Below the pieces are notes generated by a model that saw only the letters and a program-made list of their open reading frames with translations, was not told the DNA's origin and did no database searches. Positions 28,278-35,445 of a stretch of DNA of 64,000 nucleotides are shown here, one piece after another. Position numbers and translations under genes: made by a program. The stretch is from contig OZ251223.1 of NCBI GenBank assembly GCA_965240325.2, positions 2,480,001-2,544,000 on the forward strand. The letters run 5' to 3'. Position 1 is the stretch's first letter. Each line of letters starts with the position of its first letter. The stretch comes from Rebecca billardiae RCC1528. Lineage: Eukaryota > Protista > Haptophyta.

Positions 28278-30063
28278 CTACTTCGATCGATCTAGCTCAG
28301 CAGTGTCCGAGATGGACGTCTTCAATAAACGACTACGGCGACTACGCCACTGCTTGATGGAGTCAGTAGTCGTCGCGCGCGAATACGCCCCCGCCATCGG
28401 TGCGGCACTCGTATGCCACCGCGTGCCTGATGGCAGCAGCGGTGCCGTCGTGCCGTATCTGATCCCGCCCCCCGTCCCGTCAGCTCGCAGTCGTTGCACT
28501 GCCCCGAATGGCCCTGCTGGTCCGTGGTCGGACGCTGGGGCCGCCGAAGCAGTCGCTGCCGCCCGCCAGCTGCCTGCCGGCAGCGGTAGGCGCTCGTTCG
28601 CCGCACATCGCGCAATATCGCGCACGAGCACGTCGCCTGACGGCAGCTGAAGGTGGTTGCCCGAGCCAAAGCGCGCGTCCAGCCGCCTGCGGCTGATCAC
28701 GCTGGGGTGGCCTGCGTCCGCCAGTTGCGCGCCACCCTCGCCGTGCGCCGGCAGCTCACGCAGCACCTCCTCCGCTCCAATCACGCTCCAGAAGAGCTCG
28801 AGGGGCAGGTCGAGCTGCGCCGCGAGCTCGCGCGGTGCCTTGTACGTCCCCGTCACGTTACTCCACGCCAGCAGCCGCGCCTGGTCGTCGAGCAGCAGCT
28901 CGCCGGCGAAGAGGACGGGCTGTTCGTCAGCAAGATGCGGATGGCCGCACGCCGCACCGAACGCGGCGGTGTGCATGCTCACGCGCGGCTGAGTCTCGCC
29001 GGGGACGACGACGAACGCGTGCGAGCCCGCACGCATCCTCACGTTCGGACGCACCGAGCAAAATGCCTCGTCCCGCGGGAGCTGCACGCGATGTGGAGAG
29101 CGACCATGCGCGCGCAGCTTCCCCACGTGTGGCATCAGGTGATCGCCGAGGACCTCGTACTTGTTATGCTCGTTGCGCGCGTGCACACGACGAGCAGCGC
29201 GTGGCTGGATGTCGGCGGCGAGTAGTGCCGCTCTGGTCGGTTGGCGAGAGAGCAACGCGTCGCCGATGGGCGACTGTGCGCCGGGCGAGAAGTCCTCTTC
29301 GTCGGCGGCCGCGCGAACGGTGGCAAAGACGGGCATGGCCAGTCTGATGGCGTTCGGAGGGCGACGCAGAGAGAGGAGGGTGGGTGGTGGTGCCGCGGGG
29401 AGGTACGCACAGCGATGAGCTGATGATGGAGAGGGTTGGGCGCTGGATGAGGCGCGCGCGCGCGCTTACGCGCTGAAGCCAGGCGACGCGTCCCTCTTCT
29501 TGTTGTCGTTGTCGGTCGAGTCGAAGCTGGCCTGCACGTCCGGAGTCAGTAGCGGCGCGCGCTCGAATGTCCACGCGGCGATCGTCTCGAGGCGCGACCC
29601 AAGCAGCGACAGGTCGGGGAACGAGGTACACCTTGGCGGGACGCTCGGCTCGATCAGGTTGCCGCTGCGAACTTGCAAGGCACTCTGCAGGTCGGCGCAC
29701 GAGCGCGACGGGTGCTGCATCCCATGACGAGGCTCGGGGTTCATGCGCAGAGATACGAGCGCAATCTTGCGCTGGTGCACTGGGTTTTGCAGCCCGTCGA
29801 TCGCAGCGAGCTGCTCTTCAGTGACGGCCTCTGTGCGCGGATCAAGACCTGCGCACGTGACGGATCCGATGGGTCGGGCACGCGGCTTGTGAGGAAGCCC
29901 GGACGGGCGGACGGGCGCATTCGTTTGAGCGCGCCGCGACGGCGTCTTGCGTACCGGCGGAGCACAGGAGCGCGGCATACTGCCCGCTGAGCGAGGGCAG
30001 GCCGAGACGAGCGAGCCATGCGGCGAGCGAGGGGTCGGCGGAGCGTCCGATGGATGATATCAT
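28278..30063 (-). CDS. SAM domain + putative enzymatic domain (H..LA...V..AGE...N.TG.Y motif); introns 29849-29954 and 29344-29469
   Basis: The spliced N-terminus SLAAWLARLGLPSLSGQYAALLCSAG|LDPRTEAVTEEQLAAIDGLQNPVHQRKI is SAM-like. The second intron (GTAAGC...CAG) joins in frame to ORF 28278-29336, which contains GHPHLADEQPVLFAGELLLDDQARLLAWSNVTGTYK. Confidence 0.65.
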
Positions 30064-30864
30064 CGGCTCGTGGCCGGTCTTCGGGCGAGCGGATGCCAAC
30101 ACGCGAGGACACCGGGTGAGGACCGGCGCAATTCGCCGATTCGCGGGGAATCACGACGATTCATTATTGCGCTTGATGTAGAAGGTTGAGAAGCCAGAGC
30201 CAACGGCACTTCGTTGATTACTCATAATATTCCGCGAAGGGGCTTCCAACCGACCACCCTCACACTCCACCTATCTAAACCCTGTCCATATATGAATACC
30301 TGACCTGAATTCCCCTGAATTGTCGACGGATGGGTATTCCAGCCTGATAATGAATGGGCGTCTCTGTTTCGGCGACTCGCTCGGCGCCATCATCATCCCT
30401 ATGATGATCAGTATTATCGTATATTCGTCATCAAACATCTATATTGATCAGAGGTTCAGCAAATTCGGCATGAGTTACGTTCTCCTTCTGATTCCTGACT
30501 CGATGATTGATAGGTATCTCCATATACACATTGAATCCATCATCAAATCATCCAGGCTTTAACCAAATCAGGGGTTGGAAAATAGTTCTCAACGTCTTTT
30601 ACTCCGAATCGGCGCCAACGTCCTTATCAATAGTTGGTGTCAGGCTGGAGGCCCTGGCAAACGCGTCTAGGACCAAGAATCCCATCGAAGAATATATGAG
30701 TATGAGGGCGAAGAGTCGTCTAGGACGAGCGTCAAACCCGGGTTGCCGCCAACACGATACGTTAGCACCGTATGGATTCTCGATACCCTTCTCACGTTGC
30801 CGCGCGCCCGCTGCAAGCCCTCCGACGACGGCCTGGCAACACGTGATTCTCACGACGAGGCGGC

Positions 30865-33459
30865 ATGTTCGGCCTCGTGCACGTCGTCCTCAAGGAACTC
30901 GTGGAGGAGGCGCGCGGCGCCGCCGCGTGGGCCGCCGTCCTGCGACGCGTGGGCGCAGCTGACGAGGCACCGCTGCTTGAGCTCGTGCAGCACGCGGACG
31001 AACCCACCCTCCGCCTCGTCAGCGCCGCCGCGGACGAGCTCGGGCTCAGCCTCGACGACGCGCTGCGCGCGTTCGGCGAGGCGTTCGTGCGCTACGTGGC
31101 TGTGGGCGAGACTTACCGGCGTCTGCGCGCGATGGGCGACACGATCGTCGAGTTCCTCAGCCACATCAACGTACTGCACAGCAACCTCGAGTCCGCCTTC
31201 CGCCACTCGAGCTTCCCGAGCTTTGCGCTGCGCACCGCGCACGAGGATGGCGACGACACATCGGCAACGGATGCTCCGCACACGGTCGAGTTCGCGTACT
31301 CGTCGGTCCGCGGGGCGCTCTTCGCACCCGTGGCTGAGGGCGCGATCGTCGAGGCGGCGCGCCTGCTGCACGCCGAGCGCGTCGAGATGCGCCGCATGTG
31401 CGCCGCCGAGGCGTGCGCGGCGTTTGCCGGCGCGGACGCTGCATGGCACGTGACTGTTACGCCTGCCGAGGGAGCGCGCGCGCCTTCGAGCCTTCCGGCG
31501 GCGGCACGGCCGGCGGCGCCGGACGCGCCAAAGCCGCGCTCGCGCGCGCACGCGCACGCCGCCGCCACCTGGCACAGCGTCTTCTCGCGTGCTGCCGGCG
31601 CGATGAGCACACGCAGCGTCGCGACCGTCGCGCCGCCGCCGCAGCCGCGGCCGCAGCAGCAGCCGCTCTCCGCGCGCAGAGTGGCGGTGGTGGATGCGCC
31701 GTCGGCCAAGGAGGAGGAGGCGGAGGAGGAGGGCAGCGCGGGTTGGCTCTCAGGCCTCGCAGGGCGCATGCGCACGCAGCTCGCCCTCGCCGTGCTCTCG
31801 CGCAAGGCATCCTCGCCACGGCGGCGTGGCTGGTTCGCCCCGCGCGCCGAGGTGCACCCCGAGCCGCAGCTCACCGACCAGCTCATGCGCGCGGCGCCCG
31901 CGCGCCGGCTGTGCGCGGGCTGGGAGGAGAGCCGCGAGCTGCGCCGCGCGCGCGGCTTCTGGGCGGCGTCCAAGAGCCGCCGCTCCGACATCCTTCTCTC
32001 GGCTCCCGCTGAGTACGCCGACTTCTTCGTCTCGCACGCGTGGGCCGCGCCCGACGGCTGGGAGCGGCTGATGGGCTCGCGCTGCTGCTACGCGGAGCGC
32101 AAGGCCACCGCGCTGCGCGACGCGCTGCGCGAGGCGTGCGGCGAGAAGAGCTGGCGTGCCGCGACGCTCTTTGTGGACAAGGCGTGCATCCCGCAGGAGC
32201 CCGTGCTCAAGCAGTACTGCATCGAGCACCTCCCGGACTTTGCGCTGCGGTGCGAGCGCATGCTCGTGCTCCTCTCGTGGCACTACTTCACGCGGCTGTG
32301 GTGCGTGGTGGAGTGGGTGACCTTCCTCGTCACGCACGGGCCCGAGGCGATGCGCGTGTGCGCGCAGCCGTTCATGAGCGGCAGCACGACGCCGCTCTTC
32401 GTCCGCAGCGTCGAGAGCTTCACCGTGCACTCCGCGCAGTGCACGCACGCCGCCGACCGCGACGTTCTGACCGCGCTCGTGCACGCGCGCTACACGTCCG
32501 TCGCCGCGTTCGAGCGGTACGCGCGGGCGACCGCGCTCGCGCTGATCGCCGTTGACCTCTGCCGCGTGGCATCGCGCGGGGAGAGCGCGCGCGCCGAGCT
32601 GTTCGAGCCGTGGCTCGAGCTCGCGCGCCGGCTGGGCGAGGCACCCCTGGCCGCCGCGCTCGAGGAGGGCCACGCGCGCCTCTGTGCGTGGCGGCGCGAG
32701 GCGATGGGCGCGCCGAGTGCGCACGGCGGCGGCGGCGCGGACGCCAGCTTCATCGGGCCATTCGGGCGACCCGCGGAGGACTGGCAGCTCCGGTTCGACA
32801 GCTTCGTGGACGAATGGAGCTGCCGCGCACTCTTCCCCGCCCTCGCCGACATCAAGCGCGCGTGCGTGCGCAAGGAGCTGCACGACGTGGCGGCGCTGCG
32901 CGCGCGCGGCAGCACCAGCAGCACCAGCACGCGCGACAGCTGTGAGGGCGAGCTACCGTGCGAGCGCTGCAGCGGCGCTTCGAGCCTCACGCCGGTGGTG
33001 TCGAGGAGTCCAAGCAGCACGCTTGCGGGCGAGGCCGACCCCTCGACGGCGAGCATGCTCCCCGTCAGCCCCTCATGGCGCTCCAAGCCCAGCAGCGGAC
33101 GGCTCGGCATCCGCGGTGTCTCGTCCGCGGAGGATCTGGGGCGCGCGAGCAGGCGCGAGGCGATCGAGGAGGTGAGCGCGATCCTCTCCGCGGCAGAGGC
33201 GAGCTCGCCGCATACGGCGCGGCGCAAGGCGGGTGAGCTCTCCCGCGCGGCGCCAGACTCGGCGGCAGCAGTGCCAGTGGCGGTAGAGGCCGCATCATCA
33301 TCAACTCTTCCACTGGATGCTGCTGATGGTTCTGGCGACGACGCAGCGCCAGCGGCCGGCCGGCCGGCGGGCGGCAACTTGAACTTCGTCGGCCATGCGC
33401 ATGGCGGACTGCCAGTGCCTGCTGAGACGACTGATTGGAGCTTGACGTCGATCGAATGA
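30865..33459 (+). CDS. H-NOX (HNOB heme NO-binding) domain fused to a TIR-like domain, 864 aa
   Basis: N-terminus MFGLVHVVLKELV...W..V; His105, Pro118 and Y145-S-S147-V-R149. Then DFFVSHAW...LFVDKACIPQ...LPDF...MLVLLSWHYFTRLWCVVE (Glu483). Disordered C-terminal tail; no cyclase or kinase. Confidence 0.85.
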   Translation: MFGLVHVVLKELVEEARGAAAWAAVLRRVGAADEAPLLELVQHADEPTLRLVSAAADELGLSLDDALRAFGEAFVRYVAVGETYRRLRAMGDTIVEFLSHINVLHSNLESAFRHSSFPSFALRTAHEDGDDTSATDAPHTVEFAYSSVRGALFAPVAEGAIVEAARLLHAERVEMRRMCAAEACAAFAGADAAWHVTVTPAEGARAPSSLPAAARPAAPDAPKPRSRAHAHAAATWHSVFSRAAGAMSTRSVATVAPPPQPRPQQQPLSARRVAVVDAPSAKEEEAEEEGSAGWLSGLAGRMRTQLALAVLSRKASSPRRRGWFAPRAEVHPEPQLTDQLMRAAPARRLCAGWEESRELRRARGFWAASKSRRSDILLSAPAEYADFFVSHAWAAPDGWERLMGSRCCYAERKATALRDALREACGEKSWRAATLFVDKACIPQEPVLKQYCIEHLPDFALRCERMLVLLSWHYFTRLWCVVEWVTFLVTHGPEAMRVCAQPFMSGSTTPLFVRSVESFTVHSAQCTHAADRDVLTALVHARYTSVAAFERYARATALALIAVDLCRVASRGESARAELFEPWLELARRLGEAPLAAALEEGHARLCAWRREAMGAPSAHGGGGADASFIGPFGRPAEDWQLRFDSFVDEWSCRALFPALADIKRACVRKELHDVAALRARGSTSSTSTRDSCEGELPCERCSGASSLTPVVSRSPSSTLAGEADPSTASMLPVSPSWRSKPSSGRLGIRGVSSAEDLGRASRREAIEEVSAILSAAEASSPHTARRKAGELSRAAPDSAAAVPVAVEAASSSTLPLDAADGSGDDAAPAAGRPAGGNLNFVGHAHGGLPVPAETTDWSLTSIE

Positions 33460-33794: not shown

Positions 33795-34127
33795 TCAGTA
33801 CCGGTGCTTGGCAAAAGCGAGGCCCATGTCATTCAGCTGCTGCTCAAAGGAGCGCGCCTCTGCCTCGAGGAACTCCTTGAGACGCGCTCTACGGATGAGC
33901 ACCAGCTCTTTGTTCGCCTGGACGAGCTCCTCCTTGTGCTCATGGTGCTCCAGCCGTGCCAAGCGCTCCATTTGCCGTTTTGCATTGGCCTCAAACCACG
34001 CCGTGCGCATTGCCGTCATCTCGTAAGACTTGGCGTCGGCGACGTACTGCGCGCGAATGTTATCCTCCTCCACGCGCCGCGCCACGCGGCCCGCGGTCGA
34101 GTTCTTCATCGCACTGAGCGCCGGCAT
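33795..34127 (-). CDS. CFAP141: Cilia- and flagella-associated protein 141 (microtubule inner protein), 110 aa
   Basis: C-terminal EELVQANKELVLIRRARLKEFLEAEARSFEQQLNDMGLAF matches the CFAP141/C1orf189 pattern; small helical protein. Confidence 0.75.
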   Translation of the reverse strand: MPALSAMKNSTAGRVARRVEEDNIRAQYVADAKSYEMTAMRTAWFEANAKRQMERLARLEHHEHKEELVQANKELVLIRRARLKEFLEAEARSFEQQLNDMGLAFAKHRY

Positions 34128-34341
34128 GATGGCGGTGCTCGCAGCCCTTGCGCAGCGTCGATAGGGGGCTCGTGAGGATGGCTGCGCTCGACGTCGTAAC
34201 TGCAGAGAGCGCAAGCGAACAAGGCGCAGCAAGCTCCGGAAGCAAGCGCTGAATAAAGCGGAACAGCCGGACCGCCGCCAAGCTCGCCCGGCGTGGCCGA
34301 GAGCGGAGAGCCCGGGGCTCACGCCCGTGCGGATGCGCTGC

Positions 34342-35445
34342 ATGGCGCGCGGCTCACGGGGACGTAGCTCGGCCGCCGAGCGCGACGGTGGTGGTGCAGG
34401 CGAGACGCTAACGGACGCCTCCCTCCCGCGCGCGCTGGAGCACTTGCGCGTGGCCGACCCAAAGCTCCGCGCCGTCATCGACGCCGGCGGGTGGTCGTGC
34501 GACGGGCTCGTCTGCCCCAGCGCCAGCCCATCATGCTTTGCGGCGCTCGCGCGCTCGATCGTGTACCAGCAGCTTGCGGGCGCGGCCGCGGGGACCATAT
34601 TTGGCCGGCTCGTTGCGCTCTGCGGCGGCGAGCCCGGCCTCACCCCATCCACCATCCTCGGCCTCGACGAGGCGCGGCTGCGCGGCGTGGGGCTGTCGGG
34701 CCAGAAGCTGGCCTACCTCGTCGACCTCGCTCGCCACTTCGCCGACGGGCGGCTCTCGGACGACGCGATCGCCGCAATGGACGACGAGCAGCTGTCGTGC
34801 TCGCTGCGTGCCGTCAAGGGCATCGGCGAGTGGACTCTCCACATGTTCATGATGTTCGCCCTCAAGCGAGCGGACGTGCTGCCGACGGGCGACCTCGCCG
34901 TGCGCAAGGGCTTTGCCGCGCTGTACGGCATCGGCGGTGCGGACGCGGCGCGTGGCGCTGGTTCTAGGCGTGGGGGTGGCAAGAAGGCGGCCAAGCAGAG
35001 CCTTCCGACGCCCGCCGAGATGGAGTGCATCGCGGAGAAGTGGCGGCCATTCCGTTCCCTCGGCGCATACTTGATGTGGCACGTGTGCGGCATCGCAGCA
35101 GACGCTCTGCCGACGGCCGAGGCAGCGCCGACAGCGGTGGACAAGCCTGACTCCGTGCTCCCATCCACACCCGATGCGAAGCCGCGAGCGGGAAGCGCTC
35201 GCGCCGCCGCAGCGCCGGGCGAGCCTGCGTCCCCCGCGCCACATCTGCTGTCGCGGTCGGCCAGCGACCGCGACGGCGGCCGCGCGGCAGCGCCGACCAT
35301 GCAGACGCCCAGCGCTTCGCGCACCGCTGCGGCGAAGCGCCGGGCAAGCGTCAGCTCGCCCTGCGATCCCGTTGCCATGAGCCCGCCCGACGACGGTGGG
35401 CCCACGCGTGCGGTCAAGGCCTCGCGAACGCGCATGGCTCCTTGA
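34342..35445 (+). CDS. DNA-3-methyladenine glycosylase II (AlkA/Mag1, HhH-GPD)
   Basis: LARSIVYQQLAGAAAGTIF; LRGVGLSGQKLAY; HhH motif VKGIGEWT; DVLPTGDLAVRKG; WRPFRS. Confidence 0.92.
   Translation: MARGSRGRSSAAERDGGGAGETLTDASLPRALEHLRVADPKLRAVIDAGGWSCDGLVCPSASPSCFAALARSIVYQQLAGAAAGTIFGRLVALCGGEPGLTPSTILGLDEARLRGVGLSGQKLAYLVDLARHFADGRLSDDAIAAMDDEQLSCSLRAVKGIGEWTLHMFMMFALKRADVLPTGDLAVRKGFAALYGIGGADAARGAGSRRGGGKKAAKQSLPTPAEMECIAEKWRPFRSLGAYLMWHVCGIAADALPTAEAAPTAVDKPDSVLPSTPDAKPRAGSARAAAAPGEPASPAPHLLSRSASDRDGGRAAAPTMQTPSASRTAAAKRRASVSSPCDPVAMSPPDDGGPTRAVKASRTRMAP

Follow-up and report, generated by a model that had tools for sequence, protein, structure and literature searches.

A conserved protist protein linking an H-NOX sensor domain to a TIR-like effector, a candidate nitric oxide-gated signalling enzyme of Rebecca billardiae

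H-NOX domains (haem domains that bind nitric oxide or oxygen) are known to deliver their signal to cyclases, kinases, diguanylate cyclases and chemoreceptors, and for TIR domains that cleave NAD+ (NADases) the known gates are the assembly of nucleotide-binding leucine-rich repeat receptors, NMN/NAD+ in the case of SARM1 and cyclic oligoadenylate in the case of Cat1. In marine protists, links to stress and virus responses have been made for nitric oxide (NO) and, separately, for TIR genes. The subject of this work is a gene of the haptophyte Rebecca billardiae RCC1528 in which an H-NOX domain and a TIR-like domain are encoded by a single open reading frame (ORF), located in a window of 64,000 nucleotides of contig OZ251223.1 (positions 2,480,001 to 2,544,000) to which all coordinates below refer. 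The ORF (30865..33459, + strand, as are all the features of the gene described here) is uninterrupted, encodes 864 amino acids plus the stop and consists, as far as visible, of a single exon. Its product carries two domains with their key residues in place, both of them conserved among relatives, as is their covalent linkage. The order H-NOX, linker and TIR-like domain had been proposed in an original prediction made by a model from the DNA letters, and it was supported by the Pfam HNOB match, by family hidden Markov models (HMMs), by a structural model and by the presence of HNOB also in 46 out of 59 long relatives.

On the sensor side, the described protein to compare first is the beta1 subunit of soluble guanylate cyclase (sGC), which is built as H-NOX-PAS-coiled coil-cyclase. 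The H-NOX domain analysed here is of the same class, with the same numbers for His105 and Pro118, the YxSxR motif and a hydrophobic residue at the Ile145 site, whereas the HNOBA/PAS region, the coiled coil and the cyclase are all missing and the output is a TIR/HET-like domain located past a low-complexity linker. The second is the stand-alone bacterial H-NOX of Nostoc sp. (Alr2278), the best match found in the PDB with the single protein sequence (E 3.5e-12; 6e-40 with a family profile). Bacterial H-NOX domains are separate proteins that act in trans on partner kinases or cyclases, whereas sensor and effector belong here to one polypeptide.

On the effector side, the nearest solved folds are those of plant TIR NADases (RPP1, RUN1, RPPT-TIR, SNC1 and L6/L7), with Z scores of 8.2-9.2 over 130-135 aligned residues. 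They have the beta-C motif ...LS..Y...WC..E in common with the protein, with the Glu on the catalytic column. However, the identity is only 13-18%, and the effector misses the Pfam TIR cut-off, is not accompanied by NB-ARC-LRR, shows HET-like beta-A and beta-B motifs (FVSHxW and WxDKxCIPQ) and bears an extra helical extension of ~80 amino acids. The logic of the protein is that of SARM1 (ARM-SAM-TIR) and Cat1 (CARF-TIR), in which a small-molecule sensor controls a TIR NADase in cis; the TIR of SARM1 was matched with Z 8.4, and Cat1 was the top PDB match of the sequence profile (E 0.007). In those proteins the sensors are an NMN/NAD+-binding ARM and a cA4-binding CARF domain, whereas the R. billardiae protein has a haem gas sensor and no SAM oligomerisation domain. 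Finally, the fungal HET domain (PF06985) is similar in size (~220-240 amino acids) and in its three-block motif pattern, and gives sub-threshold matches in 52 of 65 family members; unlike it, this protein is without a HET match, and its family comes from protists and not from fungi.

Both modules and the principle of a ligand-gated TIR are already known, the latter from SARM1 and Cat1; what is new is the H-NOX-TIR pairing and the branch to which the effector belongs. A full-text search of the searchable literature found neither H-NOX or HNOB paired with TIR nor H-NOX with NADase, in keeping with the original prediction, to which no characterised protein of this architecture was known, and we know of no HET domain fused to H-NOX. 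In a 2025 study of TIR genes in virus resistance of G. huxleyi, haem and HNOB are unmentioned (PMC12489294). As the effector falls below the Pfam thresholds, the family carries in the databases no label other than 'Heme NO-binding domain-containing' or even 'Gcy-36'.

The H-NOX domain comprises residues 1-205 (30865..31479), the span of the family H-NOX HMM. Residues 3-176 matched Pfam HNOB (PF07700) at E 3e-20 over profile positions 2-162 of 163, and the score was 73.2 bits, the cut-off being 25.5 bits. With all the haem contacts also present, the domain is as complete as had been claimed for residues 1 to about 200. Besides the Nostoc protein, sGC beta1 was among the best solved relatives of the single sequence. 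When an alignment of 29 family H-NOX domains (A4) was used as a profile against solved structures, the E-values were 7e-41 for sGC beta1 (residues 1-190), 6e-40 for Nostoc H-NOX and 2e-8 for the O2-binding Thermoanaerobacter (Tt) type.

The residues expected around the haem were followed through the same alignments. His105 (CAC, 31177..31179), which is aligned to the proximal haem ligand of sGC beta1 and Nostoc, is His in 43/48 family members, and Pro118 (31216..31218), the haem-distorting proline, is Pro in 44/48; both share their numbering with sGC beta1, as the original prediction had it. The haem-propionate motif Y145-x-S147-x-R149 (31297..31311) is invariant in A4 at all three positions and is kept in the wider family as Y in 44/48, S in 39/48 and R in 47/48. 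A distal hydrogen-bonding Tyr is the determinant of O2 binding in H-NOX domains. This Tyr is missing from the aligned pocket, where the corresponding site is occupied by Val156 (31330..31332), aligned with Ile145 of sGC beta1 and being Leu, Phe, Val or Ile in the family; position 74 is Phe, as in 38/48 family members. By the lack of the distal Tyr and by its closer relation to sGC and Nostoc than to the O2 binders, the domain is assigned to the sGC-beta1/Nostoc, predicted NO-selective subclass. Its identity as a haem-binding sensor of the NO type is well supported by these comparisons, and ligand binding is predicted. No Pfam domain other than HNOB was matched by the whole protein at E<=1 or by its segments at E<=10, so that PAS/HNOBA and cyclase are absent from these scans, as previously noticed. 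An identity as soluble guanylate cyclase was ruled out by the lack of HNOBA/PAS, coiled coil and class III cyclase.

The effector, a domain of the TIR/HET superfamily, extends over residues ~381-617 (32005..32715); the family HMM covers 381-611, and a TIR core at ~384-564 is followed by a helical C-terminal extension. Three motif blocks define it. The beta-A motif FFVSHAW (residues 387-393; 32023..32043) contains the invariant W393, with F388, S390 and H391 conserved in at least 92%. The same bound of at least 92% holds for D438, K439, C441 and Q444 of the beta-B/BB-loop motif FVDKACIPQ (residues 436-444; 32170..32196), which aligns to beta-B of IL-1RAcP. The third, the beta-C/alpha-C motif LVLLSWHYFTRLWCVVE (residues 467-483; 32263..32313), holds W479-x3-E483, and Glu483 (GAG, 32311) lies in helix alpha-C of the AlphaFold model. 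All the residues and motifs that had been quoted (His105, Pro118, YxSxR, FFVSHAW, FVDKACIPQ and Glu483) were found at their positions in the 864-amino acid ORF.

An alignment of 65 effector-domain sequences (A3) was the basis of the AlphaFold model, of the PDB profile search and of the conservation counts for the domain. In it, all 65 sequences have E483, W393, C480 and C526, and 64 have W479. The AF2 model of the effector built from A3 reached a predicted local distance difference test score (pLDDT) of 95.2 and a predicted template modelling score (pTM) of 0.90, with a beta-alpha-beta core and the helical C-terminal extension. When this model was compared with Foldseek, 50 of the 50 PDB matches listed were TIR domains, and nearly all of the 30 Swiss-Prot matches listed were TIR-containing proteins. 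VIA-align gave Z scores of 8-9.2 against the TIRs of RPPT, RPP1, RUN1, MyD88, SARM1 and SPARTA over 113-135 residues, essentially the whole TIR, and the maximum of 9.2 spans model residues 15-195. The modelled domain is thus predicted to have a TIR superfamily fold that can be superposed on solved TIRs. Modelling of the C-terminal half had been set by the original prediction as a check of its TIR assignment, and the outcome agrees with it.

When the A3 profile was run against PDB sequences, almost only TIRs were retrieved, at E 0.007-1, with Cat1 at the top. The family sequence ...LLSwsYfeRLWCvYE was aligned on ...LSxxYxxSxWCxxE of Cat1 and RPPT-TIR, and because of this alignment W479 and E483 are placed on the catalytic W-x3-E motif found in TIRs that cleave NAD+. 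The earlier proposal that E483 corresponds to their catalytic Glu is supported by this position and by its invariance. Three cysteines of the domain, C441, C480 and C526 (codons 32185, 32302 and 32440), are also conserved in 63-65 of the 65 sequences, C480 being the Cys of the WC..E motif common to plant TIRs, whereas the other two may serve in a disulfide, in metal binding or as a redox/S-nitrosylation site.

The place of this effector within the superfamily was less straightforward. In a scan of the 65 domains at E<=1, matches were obtained to TIR_2 in 52/65, to HET in 52/65 and to TIR in 39/65; nothing else was recurrent and all the matches were sub-threshold, including the best HET (PF06985) match in the family, at 4.6e-5. 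The membership thresholds of Pfam TIR (PF01582) and TIR_2 were not reached by this protein, which had no HET match at E<=10 either; NCBIfam returned only a 15-bit 'TIR-like FxsC' hint, and the PADLOC anti-phage defence models gave no match at E<=10. Relatives in AFDB are automatically named either 'TIR domain-containing' or 'Heterokaryon incompatibility domain-containing'. When the ESM Atlas was searched by shape, haptophyte clusters came first, followed by bona fide bacterial and plant TIRs, and no fungal HET set was among the matches listed. The effector, at ~235 amino acids, is HET-sized, and its three motif blocks are HET-like; the HET domain has 220-240 amino acids (PMC12881547) and is described as a TIR relative that serves as a cell-death output on sensor proteins (PMC10197012, PMC12881547). 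Since the TIR_2 and HET matches are equal in number, the motif blocks and the size are HET-like and the shape is TIR-like, the effector is filed as a putative, still unnamed branch of the TIR superfamily found in protists, lying at about the same sequence distance from Pfam TIR as from HET. An assignment to fungal HET proper found no support, as the protein has no HET match and no fungal HET cluster was found among the nearest structural sets listed.

The distribution of the family was analysed by an exhaustive homolog search with residues 370-620 as query and a threshold of E<=1e-3, which returned 1057 representative clusters (50% identity), 62 of them at E<=1e-30; word-indexed searches gave only 1 and 7 matches. 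The protein is one member of a large conserved family and no singleton. Both domains were detected with local HMMs in 47 proteins. A maximum-likelihood tree built for the effector domain placed the 39 H-NOX-linked rows, without exception, inside one group of 51 rows, with a support of 84/86 that is not decisive. The rows of this group without H-NOX are mostly short proteins whose N-termini resemble truncated H-NOX ends, and other architectures fall outside it, a pattern that would fit one old fusion event. In the Atlas, the nearest cluster is annotated as 'Heme NO-binding domain-containing protein' (774 amino acids, 89 members, Haptophyta being the commonest) and had a TM score of 0.89 against the effector model. 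Scans bounded by the signature-motif patterns used found no relative with these motifs among the viral contigs of IMG/VR or the genomes of 185,579 prokaryotic species, and the family is apparently restricted to marine protists.

Elsewhere, the effector domain is joined to an ion channel with EF-hands or to FIST, C-type-lectin or NACHT-like N-termini; this variety of sensor partners fits a general, sensor-controlled output module. One of these proteins (P0053; L003:125-3517, 1130 amino acids, from a Logan assembly) combines the effector with an Ion_trans channel and EF-hands, and is a candidate ion-channel/Ca2+-coupled TIR-like protein.

The linker between the two domains comprises residues 206-380 (31480..32004) and is a low-complexity stretch rich in Ala, Arg, Ser and Pro. 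Its length of ~175-176 amino acids is close to the median of 166 (range 109-255) of the 47 proteins with both domains, and the family conserves its final ~45 residues (nt ~31876-32004), among them a near-invariant W366. A short simple repeat lies at 31702-31738, in the part of the linker coding for a Glu/Ala-rich run. A full-length AlphaFold model from the single sequence was poor (pLDDT 42) and was used solely as a hint of disorder. Over the first ~800 codons, the G+C content at third codon positions (GC3) stays at 0.82-0.98, against 0.43 upstream; across the linker it is 0.82-0.95, with no break between the H-NOX and effector segments. Because of this continuity, the H-NOX and TIR-like domains are placed in one coding frame.

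MMETSP transcriptomes are among the listed sources of two-domain homologs, and one such homolog (P0006) is the sole ORF of a 2.2-kb transcript-like contig. An artefactual fusion or a gene boundary hidden by an intron was rejected on the basis of the continuous GC3, the conserved linker length and the transcript-borne homologs. Therefore, the fusion of H-NOX and effector is real and conserved.

The protein would be a soluble, one-component gas sensor in which an H-NOX domain of the sGC-beta1 type is tethered by the ~175-amino acid linker to a TIR-superfamily effector carrying W479/E483. By analogy with sGC and with TIR NADases, from which the haem and NO binding, the gating, the oligomerisation, the NADase chemistry and the physiological outcome are inferred, NO would bind the ferrous haem and break the Fe-His105 bond. 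The rearrangement of the H-NOX domain would then free the TIR-like domains or promote their self-association, and the assembled domains, with composite active sites, would cleave NAD(P)+ or produce a signal derived from ADP-ribose, and a response of stress or cell death would follow. The response of G. huxleyi TIR genes to virus infection (PMC12489294) was counted in favour of this explanation, which is the best one as a whole and to which a probability of about one half was given.

Several observations weigh against it. The TIR_2 (PF13676) score of the protein is 14 bits (E 0.07), below the 28-bit cut-off, and HET matches are as frequent in the family as those to TIR_2 (52/65 each). The TIR-like C-terminal domain of the original prediction stands with regard to the fold and to the catalytic Glu column, whereas membership in Pfam TIR/TIR_2 (14 against 28 bits) does not, and in size the domain resembles HET. 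Moderate scores were obtained in the structural comparisons, with Foldseek E-values between 1e-3 and 0.2 and a Z of ~9 compared to a background of 7-8 stated for the tool; as this Z is only moderately above the background, the call of a TIR fold is carried by the uniform list of matches and by the independent sequence evidence. Moreover, the match of W479/E483 to the active site is a sequence-level alignment and not a superposition of coordinates, and at two positions (W436F and Y482V) the protein has residues other than those of the family consensus. The long and presumably disordered linker gives no obvious allosteric route. As for expression at the locus, a search for RNA runs found none listed, and three sequencing runs of unknown kind yielded only three short, low-depth contig pieces, from which no RNA support was gained. 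Finally, for HET no biochemical activity has been established, it being listed as 'ND' (PMC12881547).

This last point also bears on the main rival, which we consider unlikely, according to which the same sensor would control a TIR/HET-like domain that is not an enzyme but a module for assembly, an adaptor or a death fold, as are the TIRs of MyD88 and the TLRs and as fungal HET domains may be, so that the gas would govern protein-protein assembly and not NAD+ chemistry. It would explain why the TIRs of MyD88, IL-18R-beta and the TLRs match the model almost as well as those of NADases (Z 8.4-8.6), and it suits the ~80-amino acid helical extension, which is lacking in canonical TIRs. The equal frequency of HET and TIR matches also favours it, the HET domain, for which the activity is given as 'ND', being sufficient for cell death (PMC12881547). 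However, an invariant Glu with a near-invariant Trp four residues earlier is the catalytic motif of NADases and is hard to explain in a pure scaffold, and the best-scoring matches in both structure and sequence are NADase TIRs (RPP1, RUN1, RPPT and Cat1).

A second rival changes the input, while the output could be that of the preferred explanation: the haem domain would sense CO, O2 or the redox state through haem oxidation, or the haem would have been lost in this protein. Some H-NOX proteins are redox sensors, the ligand specificity was read from the alignment alone, and the changes G82E and R110S set the protein apart from the family consensus. Nevertheless, the domain is closest to the NO-selective class of sGC beta1 and Nostoc (E ~1e-40, compared with 2e-8 for the O2 binders), has Val156 at the sGC Ile145 site, Phe at position 74 and no distal Tyr, and presents the full set of haem-contact residues, which makes this rival improbable.

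NAD+ cleavage is the commonest TIR chemistry, which was counted against the third and least probable rival, namely that the effector is catalytic on another substrate, as a nucleic-acid 2',3'-cyclic nucleotide monophosphate synthetase, a base-exchange enzyme or an ADP-ribosyl transferase and not as a simple NAD+ glycohydrolase; nothing in the sequence tells such substrates apart, and in its favour are the extra activities of this kind reported for plant TIRs, the nearest solved structures (PMC10197012, PMC12489294), and the conserved Cys441, Cys480 and Cys526 with the helical extension, features that SARM1 lacks. Both the second and the third rivals overlap with NO-gated NAD(P)+ cleavage, the preferred explanation.

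If NO-gated cleavage holds, a TIR under the control of a gas sensor would add a new kind of input to TIR enzymes and of output to NO sensing, and the family could show what HET-like domains do biochemically. A broader and more tentative proposal is that H-NOX-TIR proteins may form a branch of NO signalling that has gone unrecognised in eukaryotes, and that in haptophytes and alveolates NO would be read through TIR-type NAD+ cleavage gated by NO and not through cGMP. In that case, NAD+ depletion or a messenger that is an isomer of cyclic ADP-ribose would couple the NO bursts of stress or virus infection to an immune-type cell death, and the HET-like branch of the TIR superfamily would for the first time be accessible to biochemical study.

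With regard to the limits of the gene, the upstream stretch (30265..30864, strand not applicable) is intergenic or promoter-like, with 49% GC and in-frame stops, and for this reason the ATG at 30865 is taken as the start of the canonical H-NOX N-terminus. At the other end, the C-terminal tail (residues 618-864; 32716..33459) is mostly of low complexity, with a conserved helix at ~637-682 that includes P658. Past codon ~800 (33265-33459), GC3 falls from 0.8-0.95 to 0.3-0.75, which makes the last ~64 codons doubtful as a true C-terminus; the stop at 33459 may not be the real one, with a splice donor or another 3' end in its place. There was no second copy of the gene within the 64-kb window, and no entry identical to the exact 864-amino acid protein in a collection of 15 billion proteins.

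Among the neighbouring genes, the divergent upstream ORFs (28278-30154, - strand) had no Pfam match at E<=1. Downstream, an ORF for an HhH-GPD base-excision glycosylase (34327-35445, + strand; PF00730, 1.9e-12) and another for the C-terminal part of the flagellar protein CFAP141 (33795-34655, - strand; PF15104, 1.8e-14) were identified, with no evident functional link to the H-NOX-TIR gene. These two ORFs overlap, and therefore their true gene models must be spliced.

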